Assembly: GCF_964204645.1 (NCBI RefSeq)
Contig: NC_134033.1
Coordinates: forward strand, 4,736,231 to 4,800,230
From: Tubulanus polymorphus
Lineage: Eukaryota; Animalia; Nemertea
Direction: 5' to 3'
DNA: 64,000 bases
Shown: positions 1,759-33,700 of the stretch, piece after piece
How positions within the stretch are numbered: the first letter of the stretch is position 1
How the letters are laid out: each line of letters opens with the position of its first letter
Translations under genes and position numbers: made by a program
Notes under the pieces: generated by a model
What the model was told of the DNA's origin: nothing
Database searches by the model: none
What the model saw: the letters and a program-made list of their open reading frames with translations, nothing else

Positions 1759-4700
1759 TCATTTTATTGGTTGTCGTTTTCTGCGTTTATTTCGAGCTCG
1801 TATTGATTTCATATCGATAGTTAGAATAGTGTACAGAAGCGGGTTCAGAGTTGAGTTTATCGGCAAGAAAAGAACGGCCAGCCAAGCGGCCACCTGGTTC
1901 GGTATCTCGACCGAAAATACGGCGCAAAGCTGAACGATTATTAACGGTAACCAGCAAAATAAATTACACAAATTGATGACTAAACTGCGTCGAGCTAGAA
2001 CGAGTTCTGTAGGATCGGCTCTACCCGAACCGGACCTGCTTCCGGATACATACTTGTACATCTGCGCGTACGACATCATTATCAGAGTGAGAATGATCGC
2101 GTTTAATACAGCGAATATAGCGAACGAATATTGCCAGCCATTGACATCTATAGATATTAGATTCATAGGTAAACAGATACCCGTACTACCGTAAAAATTA
2201 TCACCGAAATAAGACGACCGAGACAGCGGCAGAAAGGCGATTAAAATCAGAAATATCCAGCATAAACAAGACAGAATCATAATGATATTTGAGGATAAAA
2301 CCGGGTTACCGGAAAATGGGTCGATTATATTCGAATATCTGAAACGCGTGAGGAGAAGGAGAAATGTTAAAGAACCTTCGCAAGATATCGTCACCACAAT
2401 TCCGGCAACACTACATAATGAATTACGAGTCCAAGTTTCAGAATTCAGAAAATAAACACCTTTATAAACGTGATCAGTTGCAGCGATCAGAAACAGATAA
2501 ACAGACATCAGGAAATCACAAAGCGCGATTTTAATGATGAGGATATCCGACGATTTATTCTGCGTTTCTGACGAGACTCGAATCGACCTAAAACGAAATA
2601 AGATAACGGTAATATTGGAAACGAACGTAAAACAAGCGATGATCCAGATAACAGCTGTGAGGACAGTGTTCTCAATGAGGTCTGAACACGATGAGAATTG
2701 ATCAGGATCCGGGAGACACCGGTCAATATTCGGCGCCATACAACAGAATTTAAACGCGTCCGAAGCGAGAAAATATAAAGACGTCAGATTATCGAAGATA
2801 TTATTTTCCGTAGAAATGATCCGAGAATTGTTGGTGAAATCTAGAACTCCCAATGAACTCAACCCAGTAAACGCGTATCTGGATATTGATTCGATTACGT
2901 TACTGCTGATATTCAAATATTTCAGCGCTGGTAAACCTCGGAATACGTTACGAGTAAGAAACGATATAGAGAGACCTTGGAGATCCATAACCGGAAGTGA
3001 CGTCAAACCATTGAAGCTTCCATCGTTCAAATATCTCAGCGGATTTCCAGCGAGTAAAAGTTGTTTCAAACTGTTTAAACCAGTAAATGTATCAGCGTGT
3101 AGTGATACTAGGCGATTATACGACAGATCTAATGTATTTAGATTGCGTAGATTAGAAAACGCGTTGGAGACAATGTCAGATAAATCATTACGGGAAATAT
3201 TGAGCAAGAAAAGGTACAGAAAAGAGGAAAATGTCGATTCATTGAATCTAACTCGGTTATTCGATAAAATCAAAACTCGAGTCGACGCGGCAAAAATTCC
3301 AGAAATATCCGATAATAAAGTATTTTCACAATCGATGAAACGACCTTGACATTTACAATAGTTAGGACACGTGACGTCGCAGTAAGCCTCGTCATCCGAG
3401 TTATGTTTACAATTAACGACGCCATCGCAAACTTCCGACTGAGGAATACATCGATGTTCGTCACCGCATTTAAACATTCCCGGACACGAAAACGTTTCGC
3501 AATTGAATTCATCTTGTGAATTGGGACAATCTGATCGACCATCGCACACGTGTCTAATCGGTATACAGTAAGACGATGGACATTTCACTGTACCAGCTGC
3601 ACATTCAAACTCATTACAATTCAGTAAATGTTCGAGTCTTCTACAAACAGGAAAACCTGTCGGCATTCTTTCTAAAATACATCTATCTCTTCTCGCGTAA
3701 CAATGAGGAGAATCGAATGAACATCTTTGTTTATCCGATTCGGTACAGAGTGAAGTGAAATTGGTCGTGCAGTAGTTCTCTGTAGTGCAGTGAATTTGTG
3801 GTTTGATTGTTATATCTGTCGTTACTACTTCATCTTCTTCGAGGTCCCCGCCACAATCTACAACGCCATCCCGATACAACAGAGAACTGATACATTCGCC
3901 ATTTACGCACAAAAACCCGTTACATTCGTCCGAAGAGCAGCCGATCTCATCGGATTTATCTTGACAGTCAACCAGTCCATCGCATCGTTTATATTTATCC
4001 ACACGTTGTCCGTCGTTACACTTAAATTGATCAGAGGAACATAAAATATGATAGCACGAGTTCTCATCCGAGCCATCGACGCAATCTCTCATAAAGTCAC
4101 AGAAACCGCTAATCGATATAACCTGTCCATCGTTACAGCGGAACTGACTGTGTAAATTGATATCCGTACAATCGAGTTCATCTTCACCGTGTTGACAGTC
4201 GTTTCTGGTATCGCATACGCGATGGTCGCTGATACATCTTTGATCGTTACATTCAAACTGCCACGATTTACAACCGCTTATAGAAGCTAACTCTTCATCA
4301 GTTACATCATAGGAACATAGCACGGAATGCGCTTCACCTGTGACATTATCGAAGGCAGTCACTGACCATTTAACTGTTTGAAAATATGTTATCCAATCTC
4401 TAATTACAACTGGTTTTATTGCCATAATTCTTCCGCTTGTATGATTAGTCAGTATAGCGCCATACTGATGCTCATAGTGGAAAACATTTATCAAATACTG
4501 AATTTCAATACTAGATGTTATTATACCTATGTCTCCGCCGATTGTAAGACACATTTCTCTAGCTGTTTGGATTGTTAAACTTTCAGTATGGAGCGTTTGC
4601 CAGTCTGTAAGTATTTGATAGCAATGCGCTTCTATACGAATCCATCCTCTTAGACACGTGGAGTTAAATCGTTCAATGTTTTCCCGCTTTATTCCAGTTA

Positions 4701-7700
4701 TATCGTTTTGTGAAGATGTATTAAAATGGTTTCTTTCTGTTTCACAAATGAATGTCGTGTGCGTCTCCTCGATTTGACACGGGAATCGAACCCAGTTCGC
4801 TGATCCTCGGGGATTATTCAGTATCATCGCCGTACACGGCATATTGACGTCATTTATCGGTTGTTTTCTTAGCGGAGATATCAATCCTCGAATAACTTCT
4901 GGTATCGTTTCATTAACGGCAGCAGGTTCAAACCATTTCGTGTAACTGAACGGTTTCCCATCAGACCAGGAGTAATAACCACTGGACTCCTTTTAAAACA
5001 AACAAACAAACAAACAAACAAATATTTGTTATACAACATTGCAGAAAACTCTTTTTGGATTATTTTCTGTGTTCTAATCATTTTTTGGAATAACTTAATA
5101 TCTTTACACATGACAAGAACGTAAATCATTATATCAAAGCTCAATTAGATGATTGATATTTGATATGTATTTTACCTGCCATTTCAATCCAATCATCATA
5201 ATAAGCGCCGCCTGTGAATATGCCTCAAGAAGCAGTTTTGTAGCAAACAGCTTTTTCACGGCCATCATTTCACGTTGAGAGTTGATACTGAGAAGATATC
5301 CTCCATATTTCTGTTGACAGTAAATTTCAGCGTTCTCCCAATTCAGACGTTCATGTTTGATGTATCTAATACACGAAACGCCTGAATCTAGAAAATCTGA
5401 TCGGCAGCCATTGATTCGGTGTTTCTTTAAAGGCGATTGTTCTGAAGTGTATTGAATTCGAAATATTGGCATGAACATTGACAACTCAAAATACAAGTCA
5501 TACCCGAGTAGACTGTACAATACAAGTCCTGCTACTGCGTTATTTTCACATATTGTTGTTGTATGACGGGTTTCTGTAAACGTGGAAAATAAATTGTTCG
5601 GATCATCAAATATTTTGATAATTTGTCTTAGTAATATTGATCCCCTTGTGCGGGTACTAACAGATTCGGAGCATGATGTTTGTCCGATAAATTTAAACAG
5701 GAATCTGATGTAATGATTTATATTTTTGTCAGTAGGAAAAGAGAAACCGAAGAATATAGTTTCGGAGGTTGATAATCCAGGGAAGTCCGGTGACTGCACG
5801 AGTCCACAATCTACATCGCTCTTTTTGACAACACCTCTTGAACCTGGATCCAGTTGACTTTGTTTTAATTTCTGACATTTACGTCGTAATACAATCATTA
5901 GTGGTGTCCTCCAGAATTCATATTTAGTGCGTAATACTTTCACGTGGTTTAATACGAGACTGGTGTTTAACACGTGACTATTGAGACTTATCGCTGAACA
6001 GGGATTCATAGCTCCACGATAACATCTGTCAATTTGATATTCGTGTTCTGATAATACATCAATATTTCCAATCGGTAGGCGTCGATTTTCAGGTGTAATC
6101 ATGAGACAGTATGACGTCATAGTGATTTGTCGTTCTCCTTCCTGTAGAACATACCCGTCACAATCAGTTGGAACTAATTTTAGTCTACCATATACTAGTA
6201 GATCATGCCAGTTGTAAGCGTACGCTGCTACAGTAACCGGTCCACCTGATGTAATCAGGCTGACGACAGATCGACCGTAGTATGAACCAGGACAATACGG
6301 ACCATAGCGTCTAGCTGTGAAATTACTGCCATCATATATATAAAAACCAGCTCGATCACAGTTTTCTGATAAAACTGTTAGTTTGAATCTAAAAGCTGAT
6401 GATGTATGCTCATAGATGTCGATTTTCGAGCTGAGTGCAAATCTAATGATACGATATTGTAACTTCCGTTTCGAATAACGGGGGAACAGACTGTAATAGT
6501 CCACTGAATGAGTATTTCCAACCTGCAATAGATGCAAACATAGAGTAAATCATCGGTATTCAATTGATGTTCATGCCATATTTTCCTTTGCCAATTTAAC
6601 CAAAAAATATTGCGACTCTGTCGTTAAAGGGTTAATGACTTGTGTTCGATCAGGTTTGATGTCAAAAAATTACGATTCCTGTGAATTCTACACATTATTT
6701 CATCGTTGTCAAACAATTTCAAATCAATACAATAAATATAAAAGATATTTTCATGCTGTTTCAACTCACTTTTTTATCTTCCACTTTGACGTCCGTTTCC
6801 TTCAATGATTCTATTTTGTATTCGAACGATGTTGAATTCCTCAACGATTTTCCGAAAAGATTCTCTGACAACAGTAAACACAATATGACGAGAAATCCGT
6901 CAGATTTTACGCCTAACGATTCCAGGAAGTTTTCGCCGAGTAAAATATCAGTTCCGACAACCGTTAAACCTTCCAGTTTATAAACACCGATGACGTCACC
7001 GGAAGTGACGAGATCACGTGACCAGTTGAAGACGACGTACTGCAGTATTTCAGCTGTGATAGACCAGCAGTATAAGCGTTTAGACCGAGTTATTACGTGC
7101 GGCCTATCACCAGGAATGAGCACTCCAGATTTGTTTTTATAAATCGAAATCGATGGATTCGAAATATTCCAATCTGATATTCTATACAGTTTTACAAATA
7201 GATTAGTTTTGAGAGTCACTCGGACCTGTCTCATTGAAAAAGTGACGATAGCTCTGTTAGTTTTAGTGTAAATAGAGATGGGCGGATGTCTGGTTTGTTC
7301 CCGTATATTCATTATAGGTTCACTTGTGTTCCATCCGTCATAAATTTGAACGGTCAAATCTAAACCTGCTTGTAACAATCTAAAATCTATTCTCTCAAAA
7401 GTCAGATTCATACCGAAACCCTCTGGTATCCCGGACCACTCCAGCTGCAGGAAACTACATAATATTCCATACATTTCGATGATAGCAAATTTATAACCAG
7501 TTTCAAAAGTTTGCAATTGTTTTAGTTTGTTGGACGAACAGTGGTGAACAGTTTTTAGATGGTTTTCCTCCAAACGATAAAATACATAAACTCGACTTCC
7601 TTTCACAACATCATTTACATCACTCTTAAACATCAACGATAATGAATTACTGCGGTAAATATCTAATTGTTTTCCAGCACCGCACAGTAAGTTATCAGAA

Positions 7701-8381: not shown

Positions 8382-9143
8382 TGTATTAAACACCACGACT
8401 ATCAGACGATCCCAATTTTGATTGTTGATAGAAACTGGCGGCTTTTTTGAGTAGTTATTCTATCTATAGAGAGTCTGGAGCGTAAGGGCATGATGTTCAC
8501 ACACAAGGGTCCAAAGGGTCAGAGTTAGGTTAGGGTTCGAGTAGGCTTAGGTTTAGGATTAGGGTTTTATTGGGAAAAACAATAGGAACAAATGTAATAA
8601 ATGTAGATATAGTTAAAAGTTGCTTAGCCGGCACTCGAGCTTGTGTGTTCGAAACCTATTCTGACCTGTCAACTTCGAATTTTCCAAGACGACTAAACAC
8701 ACTGAAAAACTGATAAAGATAATTATCTAAGAACTATTTTATTATGTTAATGTGACGATACCTTATCTGCTGAAAAGTGAACTATCTGCAATAAACCATT
8801 AAGCAAGTGCTTGCCGCCATTTTGTTAGGGTACTTTTGTCCCGTATTGTTCGTCATTTTATTCTCTTTTTTAAAATCCATTTGTGACGCGTGTTTTATCA
8901 TGTTTTTTTGGTCCATTGGTGGAATTTGACAGTTTTAACAACATTTAAACCGTATGAATCCCTAGTTTTCAGTGATGCAAAAGTCAGCTCCCAAATTTGA
9001 AACAATGCGACATGAAAGTGACATGAAAAACGGTGGTCAGTTTTTGACACCGACATAAAAATCTATTTTTTGAAAAGTGAAGGGGTTATCACTAAAACAG
9101 CATTGTAGAGGAAATAAGTTATAATCATTCATCAATAATATCA

Positions 9144-12100
9144 TCATTTTATTGGTTGTCGTTTTCTGCGTTTATTTCGAGCTCGTATGGATTTCATATC
9201 GATAGTTAGAATTGTGTAAAGAAGCGGGTTCAGAGTCGAGTTTATCGGCAAGAAAAGAACGGCCAGCCAAGCGGCAACCTGGTTCGGTATCTCGACCGAA
9301 AATACGGCGCAAAACTGAACGATTATTAACGGTAGCCAGCAAAATAAATTACATAAATTGATGACTAAACTGCGTCGAGCTAGAACGAGTTCTGTAGGAT
9401 CGGCTCTACCCGAACCGGACCTGCTTCCGGATACATACTTGTACATCTGCGCGTACGACATCATTATCAGAGTGAGAATGATCGCGTTTAATACAGCGAA
9501 TATAGCGAACGAATATTGCCAACCATTGACATCTATAGATATTAAATTCATAGGTAAACAGATACCCGTACTACCGTAAAAATTATCACCGAAATAAGAC
9601 GACCGAGACAGCGGCAGAAAGGCGATTAAACTCAGAAATATCCAGCATAAACAAGACAGAATCACAATGATATTTGAGGATAAAACCGGGTTACCGGAAA
9701 ATGGGTCGATTATATTTGAATATCTGAAACGCGTGAGGAGAAGGAGAAATGTTAAAGAGCCTTCGCAAGATATCGTCACCACAATACCGGCAACACCGCA
9801 TAATGAACTACGAGTCCAAGTTTCAGAATTCAGAAAATAAACACCTTTATAAACGTGATCTGTTGCAGCGATCAGAAACAGATAAACAGACATCAGCAAA
9901 TCACAAAGCGCGATATTAATGATGAGGATATCCGACGATTTATTTTGCGTTTCTGACGAAACTCGAATCGACCTAAAACGAAATATAATAACGGTAATAT
10001 TGGAAGCGCAAGTAAAACAAGCGATGATCCAGATAACAGCTGTGAGGACAGTGTTCTCAATGAGGTCTGAACACGATGAGAATTGGTCAGGATCCGGGAG
10101 ACACCGGTAAATATTCGGCACCATACAACAGAATTTATACGCGTCCGAAGCGAGAAAATATAAAGACGTCAGATTATCGAAGATATTATTTTCCGTAGAA
10201 ATTATCCGAGAATTGTTGGTGAAATCTAGAATTCCCAGTGAACTCAACCCAGTAAACGCGTATCTGGATATTGATTCGATTACGTTACTGCTGATATTCA
10301 AATATTTCAGCGCTGGTAAACCTCGGAATACGTTACGAGTAAGAAAAGAAATAGAGAGTTCACGGAGATCCATAACCGGAAGTGACGTCAAACCATTGAA
10401 GCTTCCATCGTTCAAATATCTCAGCGGATTTCCGGCGAGTAAAAGTTGTTTCAAACTGTTTAAACCGGTGAATGTATCAGTATCTAGTGATACTAGGCGA
10501 TTATACGACAGATCTAATGTATTTAGATTGCGTAGATTAGAAAACGCGTTGGAGACAATGTCAGATAAATCATTACGGGAAATATTGAGTAAGAAAAGGT
10601 ACAGAAAAGAGGAAAATGTCGATTCATTGAATCTAACTCGGTTATTCGATAAAATCAAAATTCGAGTCGACGCGGCAAAAATTCGAGAAATATCCGATAA
10701 AAAAGTATTTTCACAATCGATGAAACGACCTTGACATTTACAATAGTTAGGACACGTGACGTCGCAGTAAGCCTCGTCATCCGAGTTACGTTTACAATTA
10801 ACGACACCATCGCAAACTTCCGACTGAGGAATACATCGATGTTCGTCAGCGCATTTAAACATTGCCGGACACGAAAACGTTTCGCAATCGAATTCATCTT
10901 CTGAATTGGGACAATCTGATCGACCATCGCACACGTGTCTAATCGGTATACAGTAAGACGATGGACATTTCACTGTACCAGCTGCACATTCAAACTCGTT
11001 ACAATTCAGTAAATGTTCGAGTCTTCTACAAACAGGAAAACCTGTCGGCATTCTTTCTAAAATACATCTATCTCTTCTCGCGTAACAATGAGGAGAATCG
11101 AATGAACATCTTTGTTTATCCGATTCGGTACAGAGTGAAGTGAAATTGGTCGTGCAGTAGTTCTCTGTAGTGCAGTGAATTTGTGGTTTAATCGTTATGT
11201 TGGTCGTTACTATTTCATCTTCTTCGAGGTCCCCGCCACAATCTACAACGCCATCCCGATACAACAGAGAACTGATACATTCGCCATTTACGCACAAAAA
11301 CCCGTTACATTCGTCTGAAGAGCAGCCGATCTCATCGGATTTATCTCGACAATCAACCAGTCAATCACATCGTTTATATTTACCCACACATTGTCCGTCG
11401 TTACACTTAAATTGATCAGAGGAACATGAAATATGATAGCACGAGTTCTCATCCGATCCGTCAACGCAATCTCTCATAAAATCACAGAAACCACTAATCG
11501 ATATAACCTGTCCATCGTTACAGCGGAACTGACTGTGTAAATTGATATCCGTACAATCGAGTTCATCTTCACCGTGTTGACAGTCGTGTCTGGTATCGCA
11601 TACGCGATGGTCGCTGATACATCTTTGATCGTTACATTCAAACTGCCACGATTTACAACCGCTTATAGAAGCCAACTCTTCACCAGTTACATTGTAGGAA
11701 CATAGCACCGAATGCGCTTCATCTGTCACATTATCGAAGGCAGTCACTGACCATTTCACTGTTTGAAAATATGTTATCCAATCTCTAATTACAACTGGTT
11801 TTATTGCCATAATTCTTCCGCTCGTATGATTAGTCAGTATAGCGCCATATTGATGCTGATAGTGGAAAACATTTATCAAATACTGAATTTCAATATCAGA
11901 TGTTATTATACCTATGTCTCCACCGATTGTAAGACACATTTCTCTAGCTTTGTGGATTGTTAAACTTTCAAATTGGAGCGTTTGCCAGGCTGTAAGTATC
12001 TGATAGCAATGCGCTTCTATATGAATCCATCCTCTTAGACACGTGGAGTTAAATAGTTCAAAGTTTTTCCGCTTTATTCCAGTTGTATCGTTTTGTGGAG

Positions 12101-15100
12101 ATGCATTAAAATCGTTTCTTTCTGTTTCACAAATGAATGTCGTGTGCGTCTCCTCGATTTGACACGGGAATCGAACCCAGTTCGCCGATCCTCGTGGATT
12201 ATTCAGTATCATCGCCGTACACGGCATATCGACGTCATTTATCGGTTGTTTTCTTAGCGGAGATATCAATCCTCGAATAACTTCTGGCATCGTTTCATTA
12301 ACAGCAGCAGGTTTAAACCATTCTGCGTAACTGAACGGTTTCCCATCAGACCACGAGTAATAACCACTGGACTCCTTTAAAAACAAACAAACAAATATTT
12401 GTTATACGTACATTGCAGAAAACCCTTTTTGGATTATTTTCTGTGTTCTAATCATTTCGGGAATAATTTAATATCTTGACACATGACAAGAATATAAATC
12501 GTAATCATCGAAGTTCTATTAGATGATTAATATTTGATGTGTATTTTACCTGCCATTTCAATCCAATCATCACAATAAGCCCTGCCTGTGAATATGCCTC
12601 AGAAAGCAGTTTTGTAGCGAACAGCTTTTTAACGGCCATCATTTCACGTTTAGAGTTGATACTGAGAAGATGTCCTCCATATTTCTGTTGACAGTAAATC
12701 TCAGCGTTCTCCCAATTCAGACGTTCATGTTTAATGTATCTAATACACGAAACGCCTGAATCTAGAAAATCTGATCGGCAGCCATTGATTCGGTGTTTCT
12801 TTAAAGGCGATTGTTCTAAAGTGTATTGGATTCGAAATATTGGCATGAACTTTGACAACTCAAAATATAAGTCATACCCGAGTAGACTGTACAATACAAG
12901 TCCTGCTACTGCGTTATTTTCACATATTGTTGTTGTATGACGGGTTTCTGTAAAGGTGGAAAATAAATCGTTCCGATCATCAAATATTTTGATAATTTGT
13001 GTTAGCAATATTGATCCCCTTATGCGGGTACCAATAGATTCGGAGCATGATGTTTGTCCGATAAATTTAAACAGGAATCTGATGTAATGATTTATATTTT
13101 TGTCAGTAGGAAAAGAAAAACTAAAGAATATAGTTAGGGAGGTTGATAATCCAGGGAAGTCCGGTGACTGCACGAGTCCACAATCTACGTTTCTTGAAAT
13201 TCCTCCGAATGACCTTGGATACAGTTGACTTTGTTTTAATTTCTGACATTTACGTCGTAATACAATCATTAGTGGTGACCTCCAGAATTCATACCTAGTT
13301 CGTAATGATTTCACATGGTTAAATACGAGACTGCTATTTAAAACGTGACTATTGAGACTTATCGTTAAACAGGGAGTCCTAGCTGTACGATAACATCTGT
13401 CAATTTGATATTCGTGTTCTGATAATACATCAATGTTTTCTATCGGTAGGCGTCGATTTTCAGGTGTAATCACGAGACAGTATGACGTCATTGTAATTTG
13501 TCGTCCTCCTTCCTGGAGAACATACCCGTCACAATCAGTAGGAACTAATTTTAGTCTACCAGTTACTAGTTTATCATGCCAGTTGTAAGCGTACGCTACT
13601 ACAGTAACCGGTCCCCCTGATGTAATCAGGCTGACGACAGATCGACCGTAGTATGAACCAGGACAATACGGACCATAGCGTCTAGCTGTGAAATTACTAC
13701 CATCAAATATATAAAAACCAGCTCGATCACAATTCTCTGATAGCACTGTTAGTTTCAAAACTGATGATGTATCCTCATAGATGTCGATTTTCGAGCTGAG
13801 TGCAAATCTACTGATACGATATTGTAACTTCCGTTTCGAATATCCGGGGAACAGACTATATTGCGACACTCTATGATGATGTGACACCTAAAATAGATTT
13901 GAACAAATGATTAATATTGATTCGATATTGATAAAAAAATATTCTACAGCATGTTTTCATGTTCTTTTTACCAACTTTTTTATCTTCCACTTTGACGTCT
14001 GTTTCCTTCAATGATTTTATTTTGTAGTCGATCGATGTTGAATTCCTCAACGATTTTCCGGAAAGATTCTCTGATAACAGTAAACACAATATCACGAGAA
14101 ATCCGTCAGATTTTACGCCTAACGATTCCAGGTAGTTTTCGCCGAGTAAAATATCAGTTCCGACAACCGTTAAACCCTCCAGTTTATAAACACCGATGAC
14201 GTCACCGGAAGTGACGAGATCACGTGACCAGTTGAAGACGACGTACTGCAGTATTTCAGCTGTGATAGACCAGCAGTATAAGCGTTTAGACCGAGTTATT
14301 ACGTGCGGCCTATCACCAGGAATGAGCACTCCAGATTTGTTTTTATAAATCGAAATCGATGGATTCGAAATATTCCAATCTGATATTCTATACAGTTTTA
14401 CAAATAGATTAGTTTTGAGAGTCACTCGGACCTGTCTCATTGAAAAAGTGACGATAGCTCTGTTAGTTTTAGTGTAAATAGAGATGGGCGGATGTCCGGT
14501 TTGTTCCCGTATATTCATTATAGGTTCACTTGTGTTCCATCCGTCATAAATTTGAACGGTCAAATCTAAACCTGCTTGTAACAATCTAAAATCTATTCTC
14601 TCAAAAGTCAGATTCATACCGAAACCCTCTGGTATCCCGGACCACTCCAGCTGCAGGAAACTACATAATATTCCATACATTTCGATGATAGCAAATTTAT
14701 AACCAGTTTCAAAAGTTTGCAATTGTTTTAGTTTGTTGGACGAACAGTGGTGAACAGTTTTTAGATGGTTTTCCTCCAAACGATAAAATACATAAACTCT
14801 ACTTCCTTTCACAACATCATTTACATCACTCTTAAACATCAACGATAATGAATTACTGCGGTAAATATCTAATTGTTTTCCATCACCGCACAGTAAGTTA
14901 TCAGAATCGCTGATGCGAAGATAGTTATCTCTACAGAATATAGACGGCTCGATGTCGTAGTAAACTTGGACGCGAAAGGTACCCGGTAAAGAGCTGTTGA
15001 CGAACCAATGACATTCAACACCGCGCGTAAACGACGGATAATTCGGTGAAACGATGTAACCGGACGTAGAATCGAGTGAAAACCACGTATTGTTACACCG

Positions 15101-15208
15101 TGAACTGACAGTTACAGACGGTTGATCGGTAGAGATCCGATCAGTCGTCTGAACCGACGACAGTGTCATTAGTAGAATGAGTAATAACGTTAAGAGACTG
15201 CGCGTCAT
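9144..15208 (-). pseudogene. GRL101-like receptor copy 2, single in-frame nonsense codon in exon 3
   Basis: Exons 15208-13976, 13887-12550, 12374-9144. GGA>TGA at 11363-11361 (KRCD* versus KRCDG in paralogs). ORFs 11361..12386 and 9144..11297 are in the same frame; no other lesion seen. Confidence 0.8.
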
Positions 15209-16340: not shown

Positions 16341-16915
16341 TACTGACAATTAGAAAATCATTTCTGAAAATAATGCAGTTCAGCACCCTGGATTTTAATG
16401 CGCGCTTTAAAAAACTGACCACCGATTTTCATATCGCTCCCATGTCGCATTGTGGCAAATTTGAGACATGTTTTTTGCATCACTGAAAACTAGAGATTCA
16501 TACGGTTTAAATGTTGTTAAAACTGTCAATTTCCAACAATGGACCAAAGAAACGTGATGCAGGACAAAAGTGCCCTAACAAAATGGCGGCTATAGTAACT
16601 GTACGTTTTTTTAACCTTGTTATAACGAGTTCGGATATAAAGATTTATCAGTCATGACGAACCGAGAATTTCATCCCGAATCGGATAATTTCAATAATTT
16701 TAAACCGGATAAGCCGGGCTGGCGATGGTCTGCAATTTCGGGGTACGCGTTAATAGAAGCCCCGTTTGGTAGGCGCTGTCTTTACTGTGGTTCATCGTAA
16801 TATTTTCAAATACCGTATTATGTTTAATATCTGATCGTGTTTTTTGATGTGTAGCGGTTATCACTAAAACTGCATTGTAGAGGAAATAAGTTATAATCAT
16901 TCATCAAAACTATCA

Positions 16916-19900
16916 TCATTTGATTGGTTGTCGTTTTCTGCGTTTATTTCGAGCTCGTATGGATTTCATATCGATTGTTAGAATAGTGTAAAGAAGCGGG
17001 TTCAGAGTCGAGTTTATCGGCAAGAAAAGAATGGCCAGCCAAGCGGCCACCTGGTTCGGTATCTCGACCGAAAATACGGCGCAAAACTGAACGATTATTA
17101 ACGGTAACCAGCAAAATAAATTACACAAATTGATGACTAAACTGCGTCGAGCTAGAACGAGTTCTGTAGGATCGGCTCTACCCGAACCGGACCTGCTTCC
17201 GGATACATACTTGTACATCTGCGCGTACGACATCATTATCAGAGTGAGAATGATCGCGTTTAATACAGCGAATATAGCGAACGAATATTGCCAACCATTG
17301 ACATCTATAGATATTAAATTCATAGGTAAACAGATACCCGTACTACCGTAAAAATTATCACCGAAATAAGACGACCGAGACAGCGGCAGAAAGGCGATTA
17401 AACTCAGAAATATCCAGCATAAACAAGACAGAATCATAATAATATTTGAGGATAAAACCGGGTTACCGGAAAATGGGTCGATTATATTCGAATATCTGAA
17501 ACGCGTGAGGAGAAGGAGAAATGTTAAAGAGCCTTCGCAAGATATCGTCACCACAATTCCGGCGACACCGCATAATGAACTACGAGTCCAAGTTTCAGTA
17601 TTCAGAAAATAAACACCTTTATAAACGTGATCAGTTGCAGCGATCAGAAACAGATAAACAGACATCAGGAAATCACAAAGCGCAATATTAATGATGAGGA
17701 TATCCGACGATTTATTTTGTGTTTCTGACGAAACTCGAATCGACCTAAAACGAAATAAGATAACGGTAATATTGGAAACGAATGTAAAACAAGCGATGAT
17801 CCAGATAACAGCTGTGAGGACAGTGTTCTCAATGAGGTCTGAACACGATGAGAATTGATCAGGATCCGGGAGACACCGGTCAATATTCGGCGCCATACAA
17901 CAGAATTTATACGCGTCCGAAGCGAGAAAATATAAAGACGTCAGATTATCAAAGATATTATTTTCCGTAGAAATGATCCGAGAATTGTTGGTGAAATCTA
18001 GAACTCCCAGTGACCTCAACCCAGTAAACGCGTATCTGGATATTGATTCGATTACGTTACTGCTGATATTCAAATATTTCAGCGCTGGTAAACCTCGGAA
18101 TACGTTACGAGTAAGAATCGATATAGAGAGTTCACGGAGATCCATAACCGGAAGTGACGTCAAACCGTTGAAGCTTCCATCGTTCAAATATCTCAGCGGA
18201 TTTCCAGCGAGTAAAAGTTGTTTCAAACTGTTTAAACCAGTGAATGTATTAGTATCTAGTGATACTAGGCGATTATACGACATATCTAATGTATTTAGAT
18301 TGTGTAGATTAGAAAACGCGTTGGAGACAATGTCAGATAAATGATTACGGGAAATATTGAGTAAGAAAAGGTACAGAAAAGAGGAAAATGTCGATTCATT
18401 GAATCTAACTCGGTTATTCGATAAAATCAAAACTCGAGTCGAAGCGGCAAAAATTCCAGATATATCCGATGAAAAAGTATTTTCACAATCGATGAAACGA
18501 CCTTGACATTTACAATAGTTAGGACACGTGACGTCGCAGTAAGCCTCGTCATCCGAGTTATGTTTACAATTAACGACGCCATCGCAAACTTCCGACTGAG
18601 GAATACATCGATGTTCGTCAGCGCATTTAAACATTCCCGGACACGAAAAAGTTTCGCAATTGAATTCATCTTCTGAATTGGGACAATCTGATCGACCATC
18701 GCACACGTGTCTAATCGGTATACAATAAGACGATGGACATTTCACTGTACCAGCTGGACATTCAAACTCATTACAATTCAGTAAATGTTCGAGTCTTCTA
18801 CAAACAGGAAAACCTGTCGACATTGTTTCTAAAATACATCTTTCTCTTCTCGCGTAACAATGAGGAGAATCGAATGAACATCTTTGTTTATCCGATTCGT
18901 TACAGAGTGAAGTGAAATTGGTCGTGCAGTAGTTCTCTGTAGTGCAGTGAATTTGTGGTTTGATCGTTATATTGGTCGTTACTATTTCATCTTCTTCGAG
19001 GTCCCCGCCACAATCTACAACGCCATCCCGAAACAACAGAGAACTGATACATTCGCCATTTACGCACAAAAACCCGTTACATTCCCCCGAAGAGCAGTCG
19101 ATCTCATCGGATTTATCTTGACAGTCAACCAGTCCATCGCATCGTTTATATTTATCCACACATTGTCCGCCGTTACACTTAAATTGATCAGAGGAACATA
19201 AAATATGATAGCACGAGTTCTCATCCGAGCCATCGACGCAATCTCTCATAAGGTCACAGAAACCGCTAATCGATATAACCTGTCCATCGTTACAGGGGAA
19301 CTGACTGTGTAAATTGATATCCGTACAATCGAGTTCATCTTCACCGTGTTGACAGTCGTTTCTGGTATCGCATACGCGATGGTCACTGATACATCTTTGA
19401 TCGTTACATTCAAACTGCCACGATTTACAACCGCTTATAGAAGCCAACTCTTTACCAGTTACATCATAGGAACATAGCACGGAATGCGCTTCATCTGTGA
19501 CATTATTGAAGGCAGTCACTGACCATTTCACTGTTTGAAAATATGTTATCCAATCTCTAATTACAACTGGTTTTATTGCCACAATTCTTCCGCTGGTATG
19601 ATTAGTCAGTATAGCGCCATATTGATGCTGATAGTGGAAAACATTTATCAAATACTGAATTTCAATACTAGATGTTATTATACCTATGTCTCCGCCGATT
19701 GTAAAACACATTTCTCTGGCTGTTTGGATTGTTAAACTTTCAGTATGGAGCGTTTGCCAGTCTGTAAGTATTTGATAGCAATGCGCTTCTATATGAATCC
19801 ATCCTCTTAGACACGTGGAGTTAAATCGTTCAATGTTTTCCCGCTTTATTTCAGTTGTATCGTTTTGTGAAGATGCATTAAAATCGTTTCTTTCTGTTTC

Positions 19901-22900
19901 ACAAATGAATGTCGTGTGCGTCTCCTCGATTTGACACGGGAATCGAACCCAGTTCGCCGATCCTCGTGGATTATTCAGTATCATCGCCGTACACGGCATA
20001 TTGACGTCATTTATCGGCTGTTTTCTTAGCGGAGATATCAATCCTCGAATAACTTCTGGTATCGTTTCATTAACAGCAGCAGGTTCAAACCATTCTGTGT
20101 AACTGAACGGTTTCCCGTCAGACCTCGAGTAATAACTACTGGACTCCTTTAAAAACAAATACTTATTGTACATACATTGCAGTAAACTCTTTTTGGATTC
20201 TGTGTTCTAATCATTTTTGGAATAACCGAATATCTTGACACATGACAGGAACATACATCATTATACCAAAGCTCAATTAGATGATTGATATTTGATATGA
20301 ATATTACCTGCCATCTCAATGCAATCATCACAATAAGCGCCGCTTGTGAATATCCCTCATGAAGCAGTTTTGTAGCGAACAGCTTTTTCACGGCCATCAT
20401 TTCACGTTGAGAGTTGATACTGAGAAGATGTCCTCCATATTTCTGTTGACAGTAAATTTCAGCGTTCTCCCAATTCAGACGTTCGTGTTTGATGTATCTA
20501 ATACACGAAACGCCTGAATCTAGAAAATCTGATCGGCAGCCATTGATTCGATGTTTCAGTAAAGGCGATTGTTCTACATTGTATTGAATTCGAAATATTG
20601 GCATGAACTTTGACAGCTCAAAATACAAGTCATACCCGAGTAGACTGTACAATACAAGTCCTGCTACTGCGTTATTTTCACATATTTTGGTTATATGACG
20701 GGTTTCAGTAATGGAAAATGAATTATTTGGATCATCAAATATTTTAATGATTTGTCTTAGTAATATTGATCCCCTTGTGTGGGTACTAACAGATTCGGAG
20801 CATGATGTTTGTCCGATAAATTTAAACAGGAATCTGATGTAATGATTTATATTTTTGTCAGTAGGAAAAGAGAAAATAAAGAATATAGTTAAAGAGGTTG
20901 ATAATCCAGGGAAGTTCGGTGACTGCACGAGTCCACAATGTACAGCGTGCCTTGCGTTTCCACCCCTAAAACCTGGAACCATTTGACTTGGTTTTAATTT
21001 CTGACATTTACGTCGTAATTCAATCATCAGTGGGTACCTCCAGAATCCATATTCAGTGCGTAATAATTTTAAATGGTTTAATACGAGACTGGTGTTTAAC
21101 ACGTGGCTATTGAGTCTTATCGTTGGACACGGATTCCTACTTCCAGGATAACAACTGTCAATTTGATATTCGTGTTCTGATAATACATCTATGTTTTCTA
21201 TCGGTAGGCGTCGATTTTCAGGTGTAATCACGAGACAAAATGACGTCATAGTGAACTTACGTTCTCCTTCCTGTAGAACATACCCGTCACAGTCAGTAGG
21301 AACTAATTTTAGTCTACCCGATACTAGTTTATCATGCCAGTTGTAAGCGTACGCTACTACAGTAACCGGTCCACCTGATGTAATCAGACTGACGACAGAT
21401 CGACCGTAGTATGAACCAGGACAATACGGACCATAGCGTCTAGCTGTGAAATTACTACCATAAAATATATAAAAACCAGCTCGGTCACAATTCTCCGATA
21501 AAATGTTCAGTTTTAATCCGCGTGATGTATCCTCATAGATGTCGATTTTCGAGCTGAGTGCAAATCTACTGATACGATATTGTAACTTCCGTTTCGGATA
21601 ACGGGGGAACAGACTGTCATGGTACACTGAATGAGTATTTCTAACCTACAATAGATGCAAACATAGAGTAAATCATCGGTATTCAATAAATGTTCATTCC
21701 GTATTTTCCTTTGCCCATTAACCGACAAATATTGCAACTCTGCCGTTAAAGGGTCAATGACTTGTGTTCGATCAGGTTTGATTTCAAAAAATCACGATTC
21801 ATGTGAATTCTACACATTATTTCATCGTTGATAAAACAATTTCAAATCAATACAATAAATGTAAAAGATATTTTCAAGCTGTTTTAACTCACTTTTTTAT
21901 CTTCCACTTTGACGTCTGTTTCCTTCAATGATTCTATTTTGTATTCGATCGATGTTGAATTCATCAACGATTTTCCGAAAAGATTCTCTGATAACAGTAA
22001 ACACAATATCACGAGAAATCCGTCAGATTTTACGCCTAACGATTCCAGGTAGTTTTCGCCGAGTAAAATATCAGTTCCGACAACCGTTAAACCTTCCAGT
22101 TTATAAACACCGATGACGTCACCGGAAGTGACGAGATCACGTGACCAGTTGAAGACGACGTACTGCAGTATTTCAGCTGTGATAGACCAGCAGTATAAGC
22201 GTTTAGACAGAGTTATTACGTACGGCCTATCACCAGGAATGAGCACTCCAGATTTGCTTTTATAAATCGAAATCGATGGATTAGAAATATTCCAATCTGA
22301 TATTCTATACAGTTTTACAAATAGATTAGTTTTGAGGGATAATCCGGCCTGTTTCATTGAAAAAGTGATGATAGGTCTATTAGTTTTAGTGTAAATAGAG
22401 ATGGGCGGATGTCCGGTTTGTTCCCGTATATTCATTATAGGTTCAGTTGTGTTCCATCCGTCATAAATTTGAACGGTCAAATTCAAACCTGGTTGTTTTA
22501 TTCTGAAATCTATTTTCTCAAAAGTCAAATTCATACCAAAACCCTCTGGTAACCCGGACCACTCGAGCTGCAGGAAATTACATATTCCAAACATCCAGGT
22601 GATCAATTTATAACCAGTTTTTAAAGTTTGCAATTGTTTTAGTTTGTTGGACGAACAGTGATGAACAGTTTTCAGATGTTTTTCCTCCAAACGATAAAAT
22701 ACATAAACTCGACTTCCTTTCACAACATCATTTACATCACTCTTAAACATCAACGATAATGAATTACTGCGGTAGATATCTAATTGTTTTCCAGCACCGC
22801 ACAGTAAGTTATCAGAATCGCTGATGTGAAGATAGTTATCTCTACAGAATATCGACGGCTCGATGTCGTAGTAAACTTGGATGCGAAAGGTACCCGGTAA

Positions 22901-23119
22901 AGAGCTGTTGACGAACCAGCGACATTCAACACCGCGCGTAAACGACGGATAGTTCGGTGAAACGATGTAACCGGACGTAGAATCGAGTGAAAACCACGTA
23001 TTGTTACACCGTGAACTGACAGTTACAGACGGTTGATAGGTAGAGATCCGATCAGTCGTCTGAACCGACGACAGTTTCATTAGTAGAATGAGTAATAACG
23101 TTAAGAGACTGCGCGTCAT
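16916..23119 (-). CDS. GRL101-like CUB/CTL/LDLa/LRR GPCR copy 3 (intact, ~1931 aa)
   Basis: Exons 23119-21893, 21645-20308, 20146-16916 with phase-0 GT-AG introns at the same positions as copy 1; all three exons are open. Confidence 0.88.
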
Positions 23120-27737: not shown

Positions 27738-30500
27738 ATGAATAATGGATATCTTGAAACGGGTGGCCATGGTGACTTTCCTAATGATAAGTATTACTCA
27801 TTAAATACTGTTAATGAATTATTTCGCACTTGTGATGCTAATTCTATTCTCTCTTTCCATACTAATGTTCGTAGTATCAATAAAAATTTTAATGTTCTAT
27901 ATGACACTATACAAAGCTCAGATAAATTACCTATGTTCATTGGTGTCTCAGAAACCTGGGCCACGGATGGTAACGATAATGAGACTTTATATTATATGGA
28001 AGGTTATAATAGTAAATTTTTTAATCGTCATTTTAATCATGCTGGAGGCGTTGCGCTTTATGTGGATGATCGGATTAATTTTAAATTCCGCGACGACCTG
28101 TCAATTGAGAGTGACACATTTGAATTACTTATATGCGAGCTTTTCCTATCTAAAAACGAACGCATTTTTGTAGGTGTTCTCTACAGGCAAAGCGGTCATT
28201 CTATTGAAGATTTCGTTACTGAGTTAAATGTGTCTTTAGAAAAATTGCCGAGAGACAATGCATTTATTATGGGTGATTTTAATATTGATTTACTTAAACA
28301 CAACACGGACCATCATACTGAAGACTTTTTGCATAACATGGTATCTTTATCGCTTCAGCCCTTAATAACTAAACCGACACGGATCACGGAACACTCTGCT
28401 ACCTGTATTGATCATATGTACACGAATGTTAACGCTGAACGGCTGTCTAACCTCGGAATTCTAACGACAGATATCTCGGATCACTTTTCTACCTTTACGA
28501 TCCATAACCAATATTTTAAAGTCAATACTGCGCATAGTATGCGTTATAGGTCATTCAATGAGCACTCAATAAATAATTTTAATCTATCAGAACTAAGAGT
28601 AAATACTACCGAAAATATAAAAGAACAAAGCGACCCTGGCATTTCGAACAATATAGGGTATACCGTAACAAGTTACATAGATTGCTTAGAGTTGCTGAAA
28701 AGCGTTATTATGCGGAATCTTTATTTAATGTGAAACATAATTTGAAAAAAACGTGGGATGTCCTAAGAAGTGTCATTGGTACTGCTAAGCAAAACCTCAT
28801 ACTTCCTGAGTTCAAGACTGACAATGGGCGAAAATTAAGCTCACAAGAAATTGCTGATAAATTTAATTTCTTTTTTATTGATATTGGGAGAAGGCTTGCA
28901 TCAAACATTCCCAGGGCTGATGTCTTACCAACTCAGTATCTATCAACCGATAGTCCCGATAGTTTATTTTTTAGGCCGATTATTTAAGAAGACATTTTTG
29001 CTATTGTAAACTCTTTAGATGCTAACAAAGGAGCTGGTCCTGATGATATAAAACCTAAAATTATTAAATGCTCAATTAATGAAATCGTGTCTCCACTACT
29101 GCATATATTTAATAGGTCTTATGTTACAGGTATAGTTCCAGATGCACTTAAGATAGCCAGGGTTACGCCTTTATTTAAGTCCGGAGCTACTGATAATATT
29201 ACTAATTACCGACCAATTTCTGTTCTGCCATGTTTCTGTAAAATTCTTGAACGCCTAACCCATTGCCGTCTTATCTCGCATATTGATAAAAATAGAATTC
29301 TTTGTCCAAACCAATATGGCTTTCGTAAGAACCGTTCCACAGAAATGGCATTACTCGATTTCGCTGATCGCATTTCGAAACTTACAGAAGACGGTTATCT
29401 AACAGTGAGTATTTTCATAGATTTGTCAAAGGCCTCTGACACTATTGACAACTCCATACTTTTAGATAAGCTGCTACGATACGGTATACGCGGGATTGCG
29501 TTGGCCTGGTTTATTAATCATCTATCTAATCGATATCAGTTTGTCTCTTATGATAGTTGTTCTTCAATAACACTTCCAATAAATTGCGGTGTGCCTCAAG
29601 GTTCTATTCTTGGTCCGCTACTGTTCATACTTTACATTAATGACATTATCAGTACATCTCATCTACTCAACTTTATTCTATTTGCAGACGACACAACTAT
29701 CTTTTTTAGTGATAAGGACCCAATTTGATTAAATGCCATCATTAATTCCGAATTGAAAAACCTAGTCATGTGGTTTAGAGCTAACAAGTTATCTCTTAAT
29801 ATAAGTAAAACTAATTATGTAATTTTCGGCAATATCCGTGTTCCTCATGATTTTCGTATCAAAATTGATAATGTCACCCTTGTAAGGTGTCAAGAATCCA
29901 AGTTTCTTGGTGTTATAGTGGATGACAATCTTACTTGGGCTCCCCATATCAAAATGACGTCCAACAAAGTTTCGCGTGCTATTGGCATCTTATATAAAGT
30001 ACGTAAATCCTTACCAGCTTATATTCTCCCTACCATTTTTAATTCTCTAGTTTTACCTTACATGCAATATGCTAATATTGTATGGGGTGCCAACTATTCT
30101 ATACGGCTACATCATCTAAGTACTTTGCTTAAGGGGACAGTTTGTCTCATTTTTAATGCTCCGTATCTTACTCACACTGCCCCTTTACTTAAAAAAGGTA
30201 AAATACTTAATTTAATTGATATGATAAGTACAGGTAGCTATATTTATGTATAAACTCGTTAATAATCATTTACCAAATAATTCTAATTATATTTGTAACT
30301 TCAGGTTCTCAAACCAAGCTAGAGTATTAAGGAGCCGTAATGATTTGAGTATTCCATTTTCTCGTACTACTAAGCGATCGTTCTCTATTAGTATCATAGG
30401 TCCAAAAACTTGGAACAATATTCCACTTGATATAAGGAATAAGTCCTCTGTTCAATCTTTCAAATTTCACTATAAGCGCCTCCTCTTGTCTCAATATTGA
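27738..30500 (+). pseudogene. LINE ORF2 (endonuclease-reverse transcriptase), broken by stops, frameshifts and an internal deletion
   Basis: Collinear ORFs 27738-28733, 28682-28987, 29087-29728, 29753-30253 and 30246-30500 carry the EN, RT and C-terminal motifs. Confidence 0.88.
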
Positions 30501-30619: not shown

Positions 30620-30710
30620 TCTGTTCTGCCATGTTTCTGTAAAATTCTTGAACGCCTAACCCATTGCCGTCTTATCTCGCATATTGATAAAAATAGAATT
30701 CTTTGTCCAA
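30620..30710 (+). repeat. 91-bp copy of LINE RT segment 29219-29309 at the insertion junction
   Basis: tctgttctgccatgtttctgtaaaattcttgaacg...ctttgtccaa appears identical at both sites. Confidence 0.9.
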
Positions 30711-33700
30711 GATATTAAATTCATAGGTAAACAGATACCCGTACTACCGTAAAAATTATCACCGAAATACGACGAACGAGACAGCGGCAGAAAGGCGATT
30801 AAACTCAGAAATATCCAGCATAAACAAGACAGAATCGAAATGATATTTGAGGATAAAACCGGGTTACCGGAAAATGGGTCGATTATATTGGAATATCTGA
30901 AACGCGTGAGGAGAAGGAGAAATGTTAAAGAGCCTTCGCAAGATATCGTCACAACAATTCCGGCAACACCGCATAATGAACTACGAGTCCAAGTTTCAGA
31001 ATTCAGAAAATAAACACCTTTATAAACGTGATCAGTTGCAGCGATCAGAAACAGATAAACAGACATCAGGAAATCACAAAGCGCGATATTAATGATGAGG
31101 ATATCCGACGATTTATTTTGCGTTTCTGACGAAACTCAAATCGACCTAAAACGAAATAAAATAACGATAATATTGGAAGCGCAAGTAAAACAAGCGATGA
31201 TCCAGATAACAGCTGTGAGGACAGTGTTCTCAATGAGGTCTGAACACGATGAGAATTGATCAGGATCCGGGAGACACCGGTCAATATTCGGCGCCATACA
31301 ACAGAATTTATACGCGTCCGAAGCGAGAAAATATAAAGACGTCAGATTATCCAAGATATTATTTTCCGTAGAAATGATCCGAGAATTGTTGGTGAAATCT
31401 AGAACTCCCAGTGAACTCAACCCAGTAAACGCGTATCTGGATATTGATTCGATTACGTTACTGCTGATATTCAAATATTTCAGCGCTGGTAAACCTCGGA
31501 ATACGTTACGAGTAAGAAACGATATAGAGAGACCTTGGAGATCCATAACCGGAAGTGACGTCAAACCATTGAAGCTTCCATCGCTCAAATATCTCAGCGG
31601 ATTTCCAGCGAGTAAAAGTTGTTTCAAACTGTTTAAACCAGTGAATGTATCAGCATGTAGTGATACTAGGCGATTATACGACATATCTAATGTATTTAGA
31701 TTGCGTAGATTAGAAAACGCGTTGGAGACAATGTCAGATAAATCATTACGGGAAATATTGAGTAAGAAAAGGTACAGAAAAGAGGAAAATGTCGATTCAT
31801 TGAATCTAACTCGGTTATTCGATAAAATCAAAACTCGAGTCGACGCGGCAAAAATTCCAGAAATATCCGATAAAAAAGTATTTTCACAATCGATGAAACG
31901 ACCTTGACATTTACAATAGTTAGGACACGTGACGTCGCAGTAAGCCTCGTCATCCGAGTTATGTTTACAATTAACGACGCCATCGCAAACTTCCGACTGA
32001 GGAATACATCGATGTTCGTCACCGCATTTAAACATTCCCGGACACGAAAACGTTTCGCAATTGAATTCATCTTCTGAATTAGGACAATCTGATCGACCAT
32101 CGCACACGTGTCTAATCGGTATACAGTAAGACGATGGACATTTCACTGTACCAGCTGGACATTCAAACTCATTACAATTCAGTAAATGTTCGAGTCTTCT
32201 ACAAACAGGAAAACCTGTCGGCATTCTTTCGCCATTTACGCACAAAAACCCGTTACATTCTTCCGAAGAGCAGCCGATCTCATCGGATTTATCTTGACAA
32301 TCAACCAATCCATCACATCGTTTATATTTACCCACACATTGTCCGTCGTTACACTTAAACTGATCAGAGGAACATGAAATATGATAGCACGAGTTCTCAT
32401 CCGAGCCATCGACGCAATCTCTCATAAAGTCACAGAAACCGCTAATCGATATAACCTGTCCATCGTTACAGCGGAACTGACTGTGTAAATTGATATCCGT
32501 ACAATCGAGTTCATCTTCACCGTGTTGACAGTCGTGTCTGGTATCGCATACGCAAAGGTCGCTGATACATCTTTGATCGTTACATTCAAACTGCCACGAT
32601 TTACAACCGCTTACAGAAGCTAACTCTTTACCAGTTACATCATAGGAACATAGCACGGAATGCGCTTCATCTGTGACATTATCGAAGGTAGTCACTGACC
32701 ATTTCACTGTTTGAAAATATGTTATCCAATCTCTAATTACAACTGGTTTTATTGCCATAATTCTTCCACTTGTATGATTAGTCAGTATAGCGCCATATTG
32801 ATGCTGATAGTGGAAAACATTTATCAAATACTGAACTTCAATATCAGATGTTATTATACCCATGTCTCCGCCGATTGTTAGACACATTTCTCTAGCTTTG
32901 TGGATTGTTAAACTTTTAGATTGGAGCGTTTGCCAGTCTGTTAGTATTTGATAGCAATGCGCTTCTATATGAATCCATCCTCTTAGACACGTGGAGTTAA
33001 ATCGTTCAAAGTTGTTCCTCGTTATTCGAGATCTATCGTTTTGATAAGATGTATTAAAATCGTTTCTTTCTGTTTCACAAATGAATGTCGCGTGCGTCTC
33101 CTCGATTTGACACGGGAATCGAACCCAGTTCGCTGGTCCTCGTGGATTATTCAGTATCATCGCCGTACACGGCATATTGACGTCATTTATCGGTTGTTTT
33201 CTTAGCGGAGATATCAATCCTCGAATAACTTCTGGTATCGTTTCATTAACAGCGGCAGGTTTAAGCCATTCTGCGTAACTGAACGGTTTCCCGTCAGACC
33301 ACGAATAATAACCACTGGACTCCTTTAAAACAAACAAACAAACAAATATTTGTTATACAACATTGCAGAAAACTCTTTTTGGATTATTTTCTGTGTTCTA
33401 ATCATTTTTGGAATAACTTCATATCTTGACACATGACAAGAACATTGATCATAATCATCAAAGTTCAATTAGATGATTGATATTTGATATGTATTTTACC
33501 TGCCATCTCAATCCAATCATCACAATAAGCCCTGCCTGTGAATATGCCTCAAGAAGCAGTTTTGTAGCGAACAGCTTTTTAACGGCCATTATTTCTTGCT
33601 TAGAGTTGATACTGAGAAGATGTCCTCTATATTTCCGTTGACAGTAAATTTCAGCATTCTCCCAATTCAGACGTTCATGTTTGATGTATCTAATACACGA

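Follow-up and report, generated by a model that had tools for sequence, protein, structure and literature searches.

Short variable patches on an apparently conversion-homogenized framework in a tandem receptor array of the ribbon worm Tubulanus polymorphus

A stretch of 64,000 nucleotides from the ribbon worm Tubulanus polymorphus (NCBI RefSeq assembly GCF_964204645.1, contig NC_134033.1, positions 4,736,231 to 4,800,230 of the forward strand; hereafter the window, in whose coordinates all positions are given) holds six copies, c1 to c6, of a gene whose predicted product is a GPCR (G-protein-coupled receptor) with a long outer front end. The reading that we favor, at somewhat better than an even chance, is that gene conversion has homogenized most of each gene, that about 16 older and weakly constrained patches in the outer domains have kept their differences, that a minority of codons in them change fast, and that the result would be a set of receptors with differing loops. 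An earlier reading of the window made without database searches (hereafter the sequence-only reading) had described antibody-like, ligand-binding loops under diversifying selection on a near-invariant scaffold. The evidence below would correct that picture of arms-race loops on a constrained scaffold, in that the contrast appears to be mostly a difference in age made by homogenization, and only a minority of codons have more replacement than silent change.

When the window is compared with itself, a unit ∼6.5 kb long appears five times on the minus strand (c1–c5, 92–97 per cent identical to one another) and a sixth time (c6) on the plus strand, with ∼80 per cent DNA identity to the others. Alignment of the six copies shows that a single three-exon gene model fits them all, with two GT–AG introns that are both in phase 0. 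The coding exons of c1 run from 8002 to 6770, 6522 to 5176, and 4989 to 1762, with a stop codon at 1759–1761 that closes exon 3 (1759–4989) and with intron 1 at 6523–6769. Exon 1 (411 codons) encodes a signal peptide, a CUB domain (CUB1, residues ∼45–143), and a second and third beta-rich CUB-like domain; exon 2 (449 codons) encodes three CUB-like beta domains and, after them, the initial half of a C-type lectin domain, which is interrupted by intron 2 (Pfam Lectin_C match at exon-2 residues 392–426); and exon 3 completes the lectin domain and adds five LDLa modules, leucine-rich repeats (LRRs), and a rhodopsin-type seven-transmembrane (7TM) domain. The span in which the sequence-only reading had placed its loops (5760–7500) takes in intron 1 and, on its two sides, the latter half of exon 1 and the earlier half of exon 2. 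The sequencing runs in which the stretch is represented also cover its introns and are therefore DNA, and one possible RNA run contained none of the stretch; splicing and expression are accordingly predictions from conservation and open frames.

Database searches and folding were carried out exon by exon, and joined coding sequences were used for the codon alignment. In the exon-3 open reading frame (ORF), Pfam 7tm_1 matches the C-terminus (E = 1.1e-18, residues 757–1018), LRR_8 matches four stretches directly before it (E = 2.2e-23), and Ldl_recept_a matches five stretches N-terminal to the LRRs (E = 1.4e-34). The top database match of the exon-3 protein is an uncharacterized protein of T. 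polymorphus, and the next is a GRL101-like protein of Ischnura elegans (E = 3.5e-110, 28 per cent identity over 77 per cent of the query). This match and these domains point to a signaling half of the GRL101 type (an LDLa–LRR–7TM GPCR), an assignment by domains and similarity rather than by phylogenetic orthology. As predicted from the gene model, the GRL101-type part is preceded by ∼860 added N-terminal residues of CUB, CUB-like, and C-type lectin domains.

When the whole genome was searched with the exon-2 protein, at least 95 matches were obtained (95 scored of 370 candidates), 90 of them without a stop codon, and by this count the array of c1–c6 looks to be a small part of a very large tandem receptor family evolving by birth and death. 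From this family we took two paralog sets in which exons 1 and 2 are intact. Clade A comprises 19 close paralogs of c1; clade B comprises 18 that belong to a second array, located on a different contig, and has ∼60 per cent protein identity to clade A.

The sequence-only reading was correct that c1–c5 are nearly invariant except in short and drastically different segments. In 100-bp windows, DNA identity among these copies is 0.96–0.99 over CUB1 and the LRR and 7TM regions and 0.92–0.98 across the LDLa stretch, and it drops to 0.83–0.89 in windows that hold patches; measured over short patches, it is 70–89 per cent. All five peptide sets quoted in that reading were recovered at homologous positions of c1–c5 (in c1, at 7460–7489, 7214–7234, 6385–6414, 5992–6027, and 5806–5856). 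Across clades A and B most of the variation is confined to 16 contiguous patches of 5–19 alignment columns (4–19 codons) each, 168 of 898 columns and roughly a fifth of exons 1 and 2, and the variable columns of the two clades coincide (correlation of entropy, r = 0.37). Exonic indels among c1–c5 are multiples of three (in c3 as two small adjacent gaps summing to 3 bp), except for a 2-bp deletion in c4; the indels claimed for the segments are thus in frame throughout the intact copies, with a frameshift in the pseudogene c4.

In c1, where all patches lie on the minus strand, the first is at 7526–7549 (residues 152–159; sites 156 and 159 have high posteriors in the site-class test described below) and is followed by patch 2 at 7499–7513 (residues 164–168). 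Patch 3, at 7445–7483 (residues 174–186), contains the first exon-1 peptide set and has a ratio of replacement to silent differences per site (pN/pS) of 1.65. Patch 4 lies at 7370–7393 (residues 204–211), and patch 5, with the second exon-1 peptide set, at 7211–7255 (residues 250–264; pN/pS 0.83). Patch 6 straddles intron 1, with residues 410–411 in exon 1 (6770–6775) and residues 412–422 in exon 2 (6490–6522); its exon-2 part has a pN/pS of 2.04 and five high-posterior sites shared with clade B. Patch 7 (6382–6408, residues 450–458) is a predicted hairpin loop whose c1 variant is unique in the genome, and patch 8 is at 6172–6207 (residues 517–528). Two invariant cysteines, exon-2 C167 and C175, close the loop formed by patch 9 (6007–6030, residues 576–583), which has a pN/pS of 3.48 among c1–c5, and patch 10 is at 5899–5919 (residues 613–619). 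Patches 11 and 12 (5809–5862, residues 632–649; pN/pS 1.02) form a linker before the last CUB-like domain, and here too c1 has a variant that occurs nowhere else in the genome. The remaining patches are at 5746–5772 (patch 13, residues 662–670), 5638–5667 (patch 14, residues 697–706), 5572–5595 (patch 15, residues 721–728, stronger in the second subfamily), and 5407–5427 (patch 16, residues 777–783). A further variable stretch was observed outside exons 1 and 2, at ∼4520–4765 in exon 3 of c1 between the lectin and LDLa regions (pN ∼0.10, pN/pS 1.1–1.35 among c1–c5 in 30-codon windows).

Replacement (pN) and silent (pS) differences were counted by the Nei–Gojobori method. Among c1–c5, the segments of the sequence-only reading plus one added segment have pS 0.168 and pN 0.213, a ratio of 1.26 that is biased upward because the segments were picked for their amino-acid variability; the remainder of exons 1 and 2 has pS 0.103 and pN 0.040 (pN/pS 0.39), and exon 3 has pS 0.069 and pN 0.026 (0.37). 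Taking whole contiguous patches in the larger sets removes most of this bias. Clade A then has pS 0.282 and pN 0.252 in patches (pN/pS 0.89) against pS 0.150 and pN 0.053 outside them (0.35), and clade B has pS 0.239 and pN 0.231 in patches (0.97) against pS 0.112 and pN 0.046 outside them (0.41). Averaged over a whole patch, replacement is about as frequent as silent change. Silent divergence in the patches is about twice the framework level in both clades. Both findings largely match outcomes that the sequence-only reading had itself named as refuting it. Where the flanks are at most 1 per cent diverged and the patch between them differs, patch pS is 0.133 in clade A and 0.057 in clade B against ∼0.01 in the flanks, an excess put at 6–10-fold, which makes these differences older than the sequence on either side of them; in clade B, such patches have a pN/pS of 1.93.

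It might be expected that a uniform framework reflects constraint on the protein. However, framework windows have a pS of 0.00–0.05 against 0.12–0.27 in variable windows, and since the framework is nearly identical at silent sites too, protein constraint cannot explain its uniformity: the framework is young and not merely constrained. Exons 1 and 2 of c1 are 100 per cent identical, in successive tracts of 60–230 codons, to the paralog L005, then to c2 (L003), and then to the paralog L006, and some patches are carried within these tracts. L005 and L006 lie ∼1.5 Mb from c1. This mosaic of identical tracts, together with the low silent divergence, points to gene conversion or unequal exchange as the process that keeps the framework alike and that the patches escape. 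Independent sequencing runs give a read k-mer depth of 16,548 in one framework bin against 190–470 in patch bins. The near-invariant scaffold and constant signaling module of the sequence-only reading are therefore uniform as described, and homogenized by gene conversion rather than only constrained.

A separate observation concerns c6, which is 92–98 per cent identical to c1–c5 across the LDLa region (pS 0.02–0.06; 4188–4888 in c1 and about 57900–58600 in c6) and 50–80 per cent identical outside it (pS 0.5–0.8). The region has the look of a tract recently converted between subfamilies that lie on opposite strands.

The proposed sequence of events is as follows. Frequent gene conversion or unequal exchange between paralogs would keep most of each gene near identical, silent sites included, and would leave out some 16 short patches. 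These patches would retain older, divergent, and often unique variants, accept in-frame indels, and change at a near-neutral rate on average, with a minority of their codons changing faster than silent sites. The outcome would be a germline set of receptors that share one signaling module and differ in their outer loops, differences that probably tune them to distinct ligands such as chemical or microbial cues. We infer from this pattern that the patches may contact ligand, and that selection, rather than the divergence of the patches blocking conversion, may be what keeps them different.

Selection at the level of sites was assessed with a codon-likelihood routine of our own, which uses an MG94-type model, fixed maximum-likelihood trees for each 112-codon block, and a grid of silent and replacement rates. 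A mixture with classes in which the replacement-to-silent rate ratio (omega) exceeds 1 is preferred to one with omega at or below 1, with a gain of twice the log-likelihood difference (2 delta lnL) of 40.0 in clade A and 25.3 in clade B. Null simulations under the restricted model reached a maximum of 14.4 in 24 runs for clade A and of 5.6 in only 5 runs for clade B, and with trees for 56-codon blocks the gain is 28.9 (A) and 27.0 (B). About 20 per cent of codons (13–22 per cent) fall in classes with omega above 1. Sites with a posterior above 0.9 number 20 in clade A and 60 in clade B, of which 10 are shared against 1.3 expected (p = 9e-8). Sites flagged in clade A have an omega of 1.79 in clade B (p = 0.02), and sites flagged at 0.95 in clade B have an omega of 1.8 in clade A (p = 0.004). 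Sites picked by entropy and tested within their own subfamily (omega 1.25–2.5) were dropped as selection-biased in favor of these cross-subfamily tests. A core of a few dozen codons thus probably changes faster than neutral, and most patch codons are probably simply unconstrained; the claim of diversifying selection has support, with the caveats given below, for a class of sites and not for the patches as a whole.

The identity and shape of the front end bear on what the patches could do. CUB1 is a CUB domain by sequence (Pfam PF00431, E = 3.8e-8, residues 57–147, 34.1 bits against a cut-off of 21.4), and its profile matches a CUB domain of cubilin (E = 4e-11). Pfam CUB was absent from all 55 exon-2 proteins scanned, and a PDB profile search of exon 2 matched only the lectin half. 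Among 1.84 billion representative proteins, searched exhaustively, no sequence relative of exon-2 residues 1–350 came to light; 14 of the 15 matches were to the lectin half, and the only other, P0028 (an ankyrin-repeat NTPase), was rejected as a spurious repeat match. The CUB-like front end is, at this sensitivity, a sequence orphan.

Exon 1 and exon 2 were each folded on their own from paralog-only alignments, and both models are all-beta and of low confidence (predicted local distance difference test, pLDDT, 50.7 for exon 1 and 57.5 for exon 2), usable for secondary structure only. A Foldseek search with the exon-2 model returned multi-CUB proteins (neuropilin, cubilin, MASP, PCPE-1, and C1r/C1s) as all of its top 13 matches at a probability of 0.97–1.0, with template modeling scores of ∼0.2 on a model whose mean pLDDT is 57.5. 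The "CUB region" of the sequence-only reading thus has one domain that is CUB by sequence, the first of exon 1, and exon-2 domains that are CUB-like by fold search on a low-confidence model. On these models most patches fall in predicted inter-strand loops and linkers of the CUB-like domains. The variable segments described as loops are accordingly mostly predicted loops, one of them closed by cysteines, and the longest and most variable of them, patches 11 and 12, is an inter-domain linker with a pLDDT below 50.

Several results weigh against the combination of homogenized framework and partly selected patches that we favor. The patch-wide pN/pS is not above 1 in either clade. A per-site test over the 19 paralogs of clade A finds 88 sites under purifying selection, and replacement exceeds silent change at p < 0.05 in only 15 of 878 sites, no more than chance would give; the test is too weak to decide by itself. 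Dropping columns within three codons of a gap reduces the gain to 22.8 in clade B and to 15.4 in clade A, the latter near the null maximum, and conversion within blocks can inflate the likelihood gain, a caveat for all of the tree-based figures. Looser sets of sites carried across subfamilies give an omega of 1.0–1.3, which is not significant. Enrichment of variable columns in predicted loops is modest in clade A (odds ratio 2.3, p = 0.001) and not significant in clade B, on models of pLDDT 51–58 throughout. Finally, three of the five local copies (c2, c4, and c5 among c1–c5) are broken genes.

It is possible, if rather doubtful, that the patches are purely neutral. Unconstrained loops and linkers would drift, and conversion would erase divergence elsewhere and halt at stretches too different to pair, with no adaptive diversification. 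Patch-wide ratios just below 1, doubled silent divergence in the patches, a most variable segment that lies in a low-confidence linker, a per-site test that does not exceed chance, and loose cross-validated sites that do not depart significantly from neutrality are all consistent with such drift. It is less easily reconciled with a mixture test that favors a class with omega above 1 well beyond the simulated nulls, or with the strictest flagged sites, which replicate across subfamilies at omega ∼1.8. Nor would drift readily account for the pN/pS of 3.5 in the cysteine-closed loop among c1–c5, or for the excess of replacement change in clade B where patches differ within near-identical flanks.

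The strong form of the sequence-only reading, in which CDR-like loops in contact with ligand cluster on one CUB-like face, diversify mainly by selection, and sit on a scaffold made invariant by constraint, is in our judgment quite unlikely. Variable positions do recur in the two subfamilies, no indel breaks the frame in the intact copies, the likelihood tests support a site class with omega above 1, and the fold search points to CUB domains, those of cubilin, MASP, and neuropilin being established examples of domains that bind ligands through loops. However, the near identity of the scaffold at silent sites and its mosaic structure speak for homogenization instead of constraint, the patches as a whole have a dN/dS of ∼1 with raised dS, and the structure models are poor.

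Artefact or decay (misassembly of the array, misalignment at indels, or mutations piling up in pseudogenes) is very improbable: c2, c4, and c5 are indeed disrupted, and many variable columns adjoin indels whose removal lowers the clade A signal, but variation falls in the same patches across the 19 and 18 paralogs whose exons 1 and 2 are intact, the indels are in frame, and the signal persists in gap-free columns. In addition, the region of c1 at 5717–5885, which includes a patch unique to c1, is matched without difference by contigs from two independent read runs, and the patch is therefore real and not an assembly error.

We give just as little credence to a dedicated diversifying mechanism, whether silent donor cassettes or targeted hypermutation as in chicken antibody genes or antigenic variation, even though some patch variants are common to otherwise different paralogs and the copies are mosaic. 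Genome-wide DNA searches with two c1 patches found no match above 86 per cent for 6385–6414 and none above 83 per cent for 5806–5856 in the whole assembly, so that neither was copied from a silent donor; every match fell at the homologous place of another family gene, and the searches turned up no separate array of cassettes. There is no sign of somatic change, and assembly and read contigs agree.

Only three of the six copies are intact, namely c1 (1936 codons), c3 (16860–23119, minus strand, 1931 codons), and c6 (54869–61023, plus strand, 1937 codons), the last a divergent member of the subfamily. The receptor repertoire that the sequence-only reading saw in c1–c5 is accordingly reduced to c1 and c3. 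The same gene model applies to c2 (9080–15208, minus strand), which has one in-frame stop (GGA to TGA) at 11361–11363. On the minus strand at 30710–36302, c4 is a pseudogene, which combines the 2-bp deletion near 35958 with another of 225 bp, contains a premature stop, and lacks its 3′ end. Next to this truncated end, near 30710, are ORFs of a LINE-like (long interspersed nuclear element) element with endonuclease/exonuclease/phosphatase and reverse transcriptase domains (27738–29728, plus strand), and the element, just past the point of 3′ loss, may be the cause of the truncation. In c5 (37930–44455, minus strand) there are two in-frame stops, at 41849–41851 and 40295–40297. Its intron 2 (41271–41708) contains a 145-bp unit three times in tandem with 94 per cent matches, and because the unit takes in the splice donor together with the final bases of exon 2, there are three candidate donors in c5.

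Other features of the window and of the family were noted in passing. An ORF of 173–177 codons runs antisense to the LRR region in four copies (2816–3349, 10213–10734, 31374–31907, and 39048–39581, plus strand) and is probably a by-product of the codon make-up of the repeat. Between c5 and c6 lies an ORF of 248 codons with matches to GDSL-like lipase/acylhydrolase (50851–51597, minus strand), unrelated to the receptors. In two distant paralogs (G000:C9:2852018-2853355 and G000:C9:2930690-2932009) the exon-2 match lies within open frames of 1608 and 1568 codons, which suggests that intron 2 has been lost in them. Several exon-2 matches at G000:C6:19.82-19.87 Mb and 20.05-20.11 Mb are paired, with equal scores and ∼232 kb apart, and suggest that part of the second array was duplicated, either in a large segmental event or in the assembly.

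The diversity of these receptors can now be located in some sixteen patches of a lineage-specific, CUB-like front end on a framework that conversion appears to keep uniform, and the patches offer concrete residues for swap-and-bind tests. The family would also be a clear case of concerted evolution and local diversification coexisting within one gene. A bolder extension, which we consider improbable, is that the genome encodes a germline repertoire of a few hundred GPCRs with antibody-like loops on lineage-specific CUB-like ectodomains, in which selection keeps the loops different while conversion homogenizes the framework and reassorts loop variants. If true, this would be combinatorial recognition, for immunity or for the sensing of prey or mates, wired directly to G-protein signaling.

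Several known systems share parts of this arrangement. As is generally known, MHC, KIR, and vertebrate chemoreceptor clusters are likewise tandem birth-and-death arrays with pseudogenes and a homogenized framework, and their variation too is concentrated in short segments, fixed in position, where dN/dS is raised. They differ in that their variable sites are known ligand contacts with a dN/dS clearly above 1, whereas the ratio here is ∼1 across the patches and ligand contact is a conjecture. The ligand-binding CUB domains of cubilin, MASP/C1r/C1s, neuropilin, and PCPE-1 are like CUB1 by sequence, and multi-CUB proteins are the top fold matches of the low-confidence exon-2 model; unlike them, the exon-2 domains have no Pfam CUB match. 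The vertebrate receptors RXFP1 and RXFP2 (type C LGRs) share the LDLa–LRR–7TM layout of the signaling half. The RXFPs differ in that, as hormone receptors, they are single-copy, carry one LDLa module, lack a CUB or lectin front end, and have no repertoire of paralogs.

The closest comparison is with molluscs. Apple snails have 29–132 tandem GRL101 genes, many of which are expressed in tentacles and have been read as chemosensors (PMC6573481). The GRL101 receptors of Lymnaea and apple snails (PMC6573481) have the same order of LDLa, LRR, and rhodopsin-type 7TM domains as the T. polymorphus genes, and in both groups there is tandem expansion to tens or hundreds of genes for which a role in sensing the environment has been proposed. 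Unlike mollusc GRL101, the T. polymorphus genes add the ∼860 N-terminal residues of CUB, CUB-like, and C-type lectin domains, which are the site of the variation, and the family is larger than the mollusc expansions (at least 95 scored matches, 370 candidates). A survey of 238 lophotrochozoan genomes described large lineage-specific expansions of class-A receptors in ribbon worms and made no mention of GRL101, and our literature search found no paper on ribbon-worm GRL101-type receptors or their variable loops. Given that varied sets of GRL101 sensors are already known from snails, what is new here is the long front end of CUB-like and lectin domains, the fixed positions of the variable patches, and the measured interplay of those patches with gene conversion.

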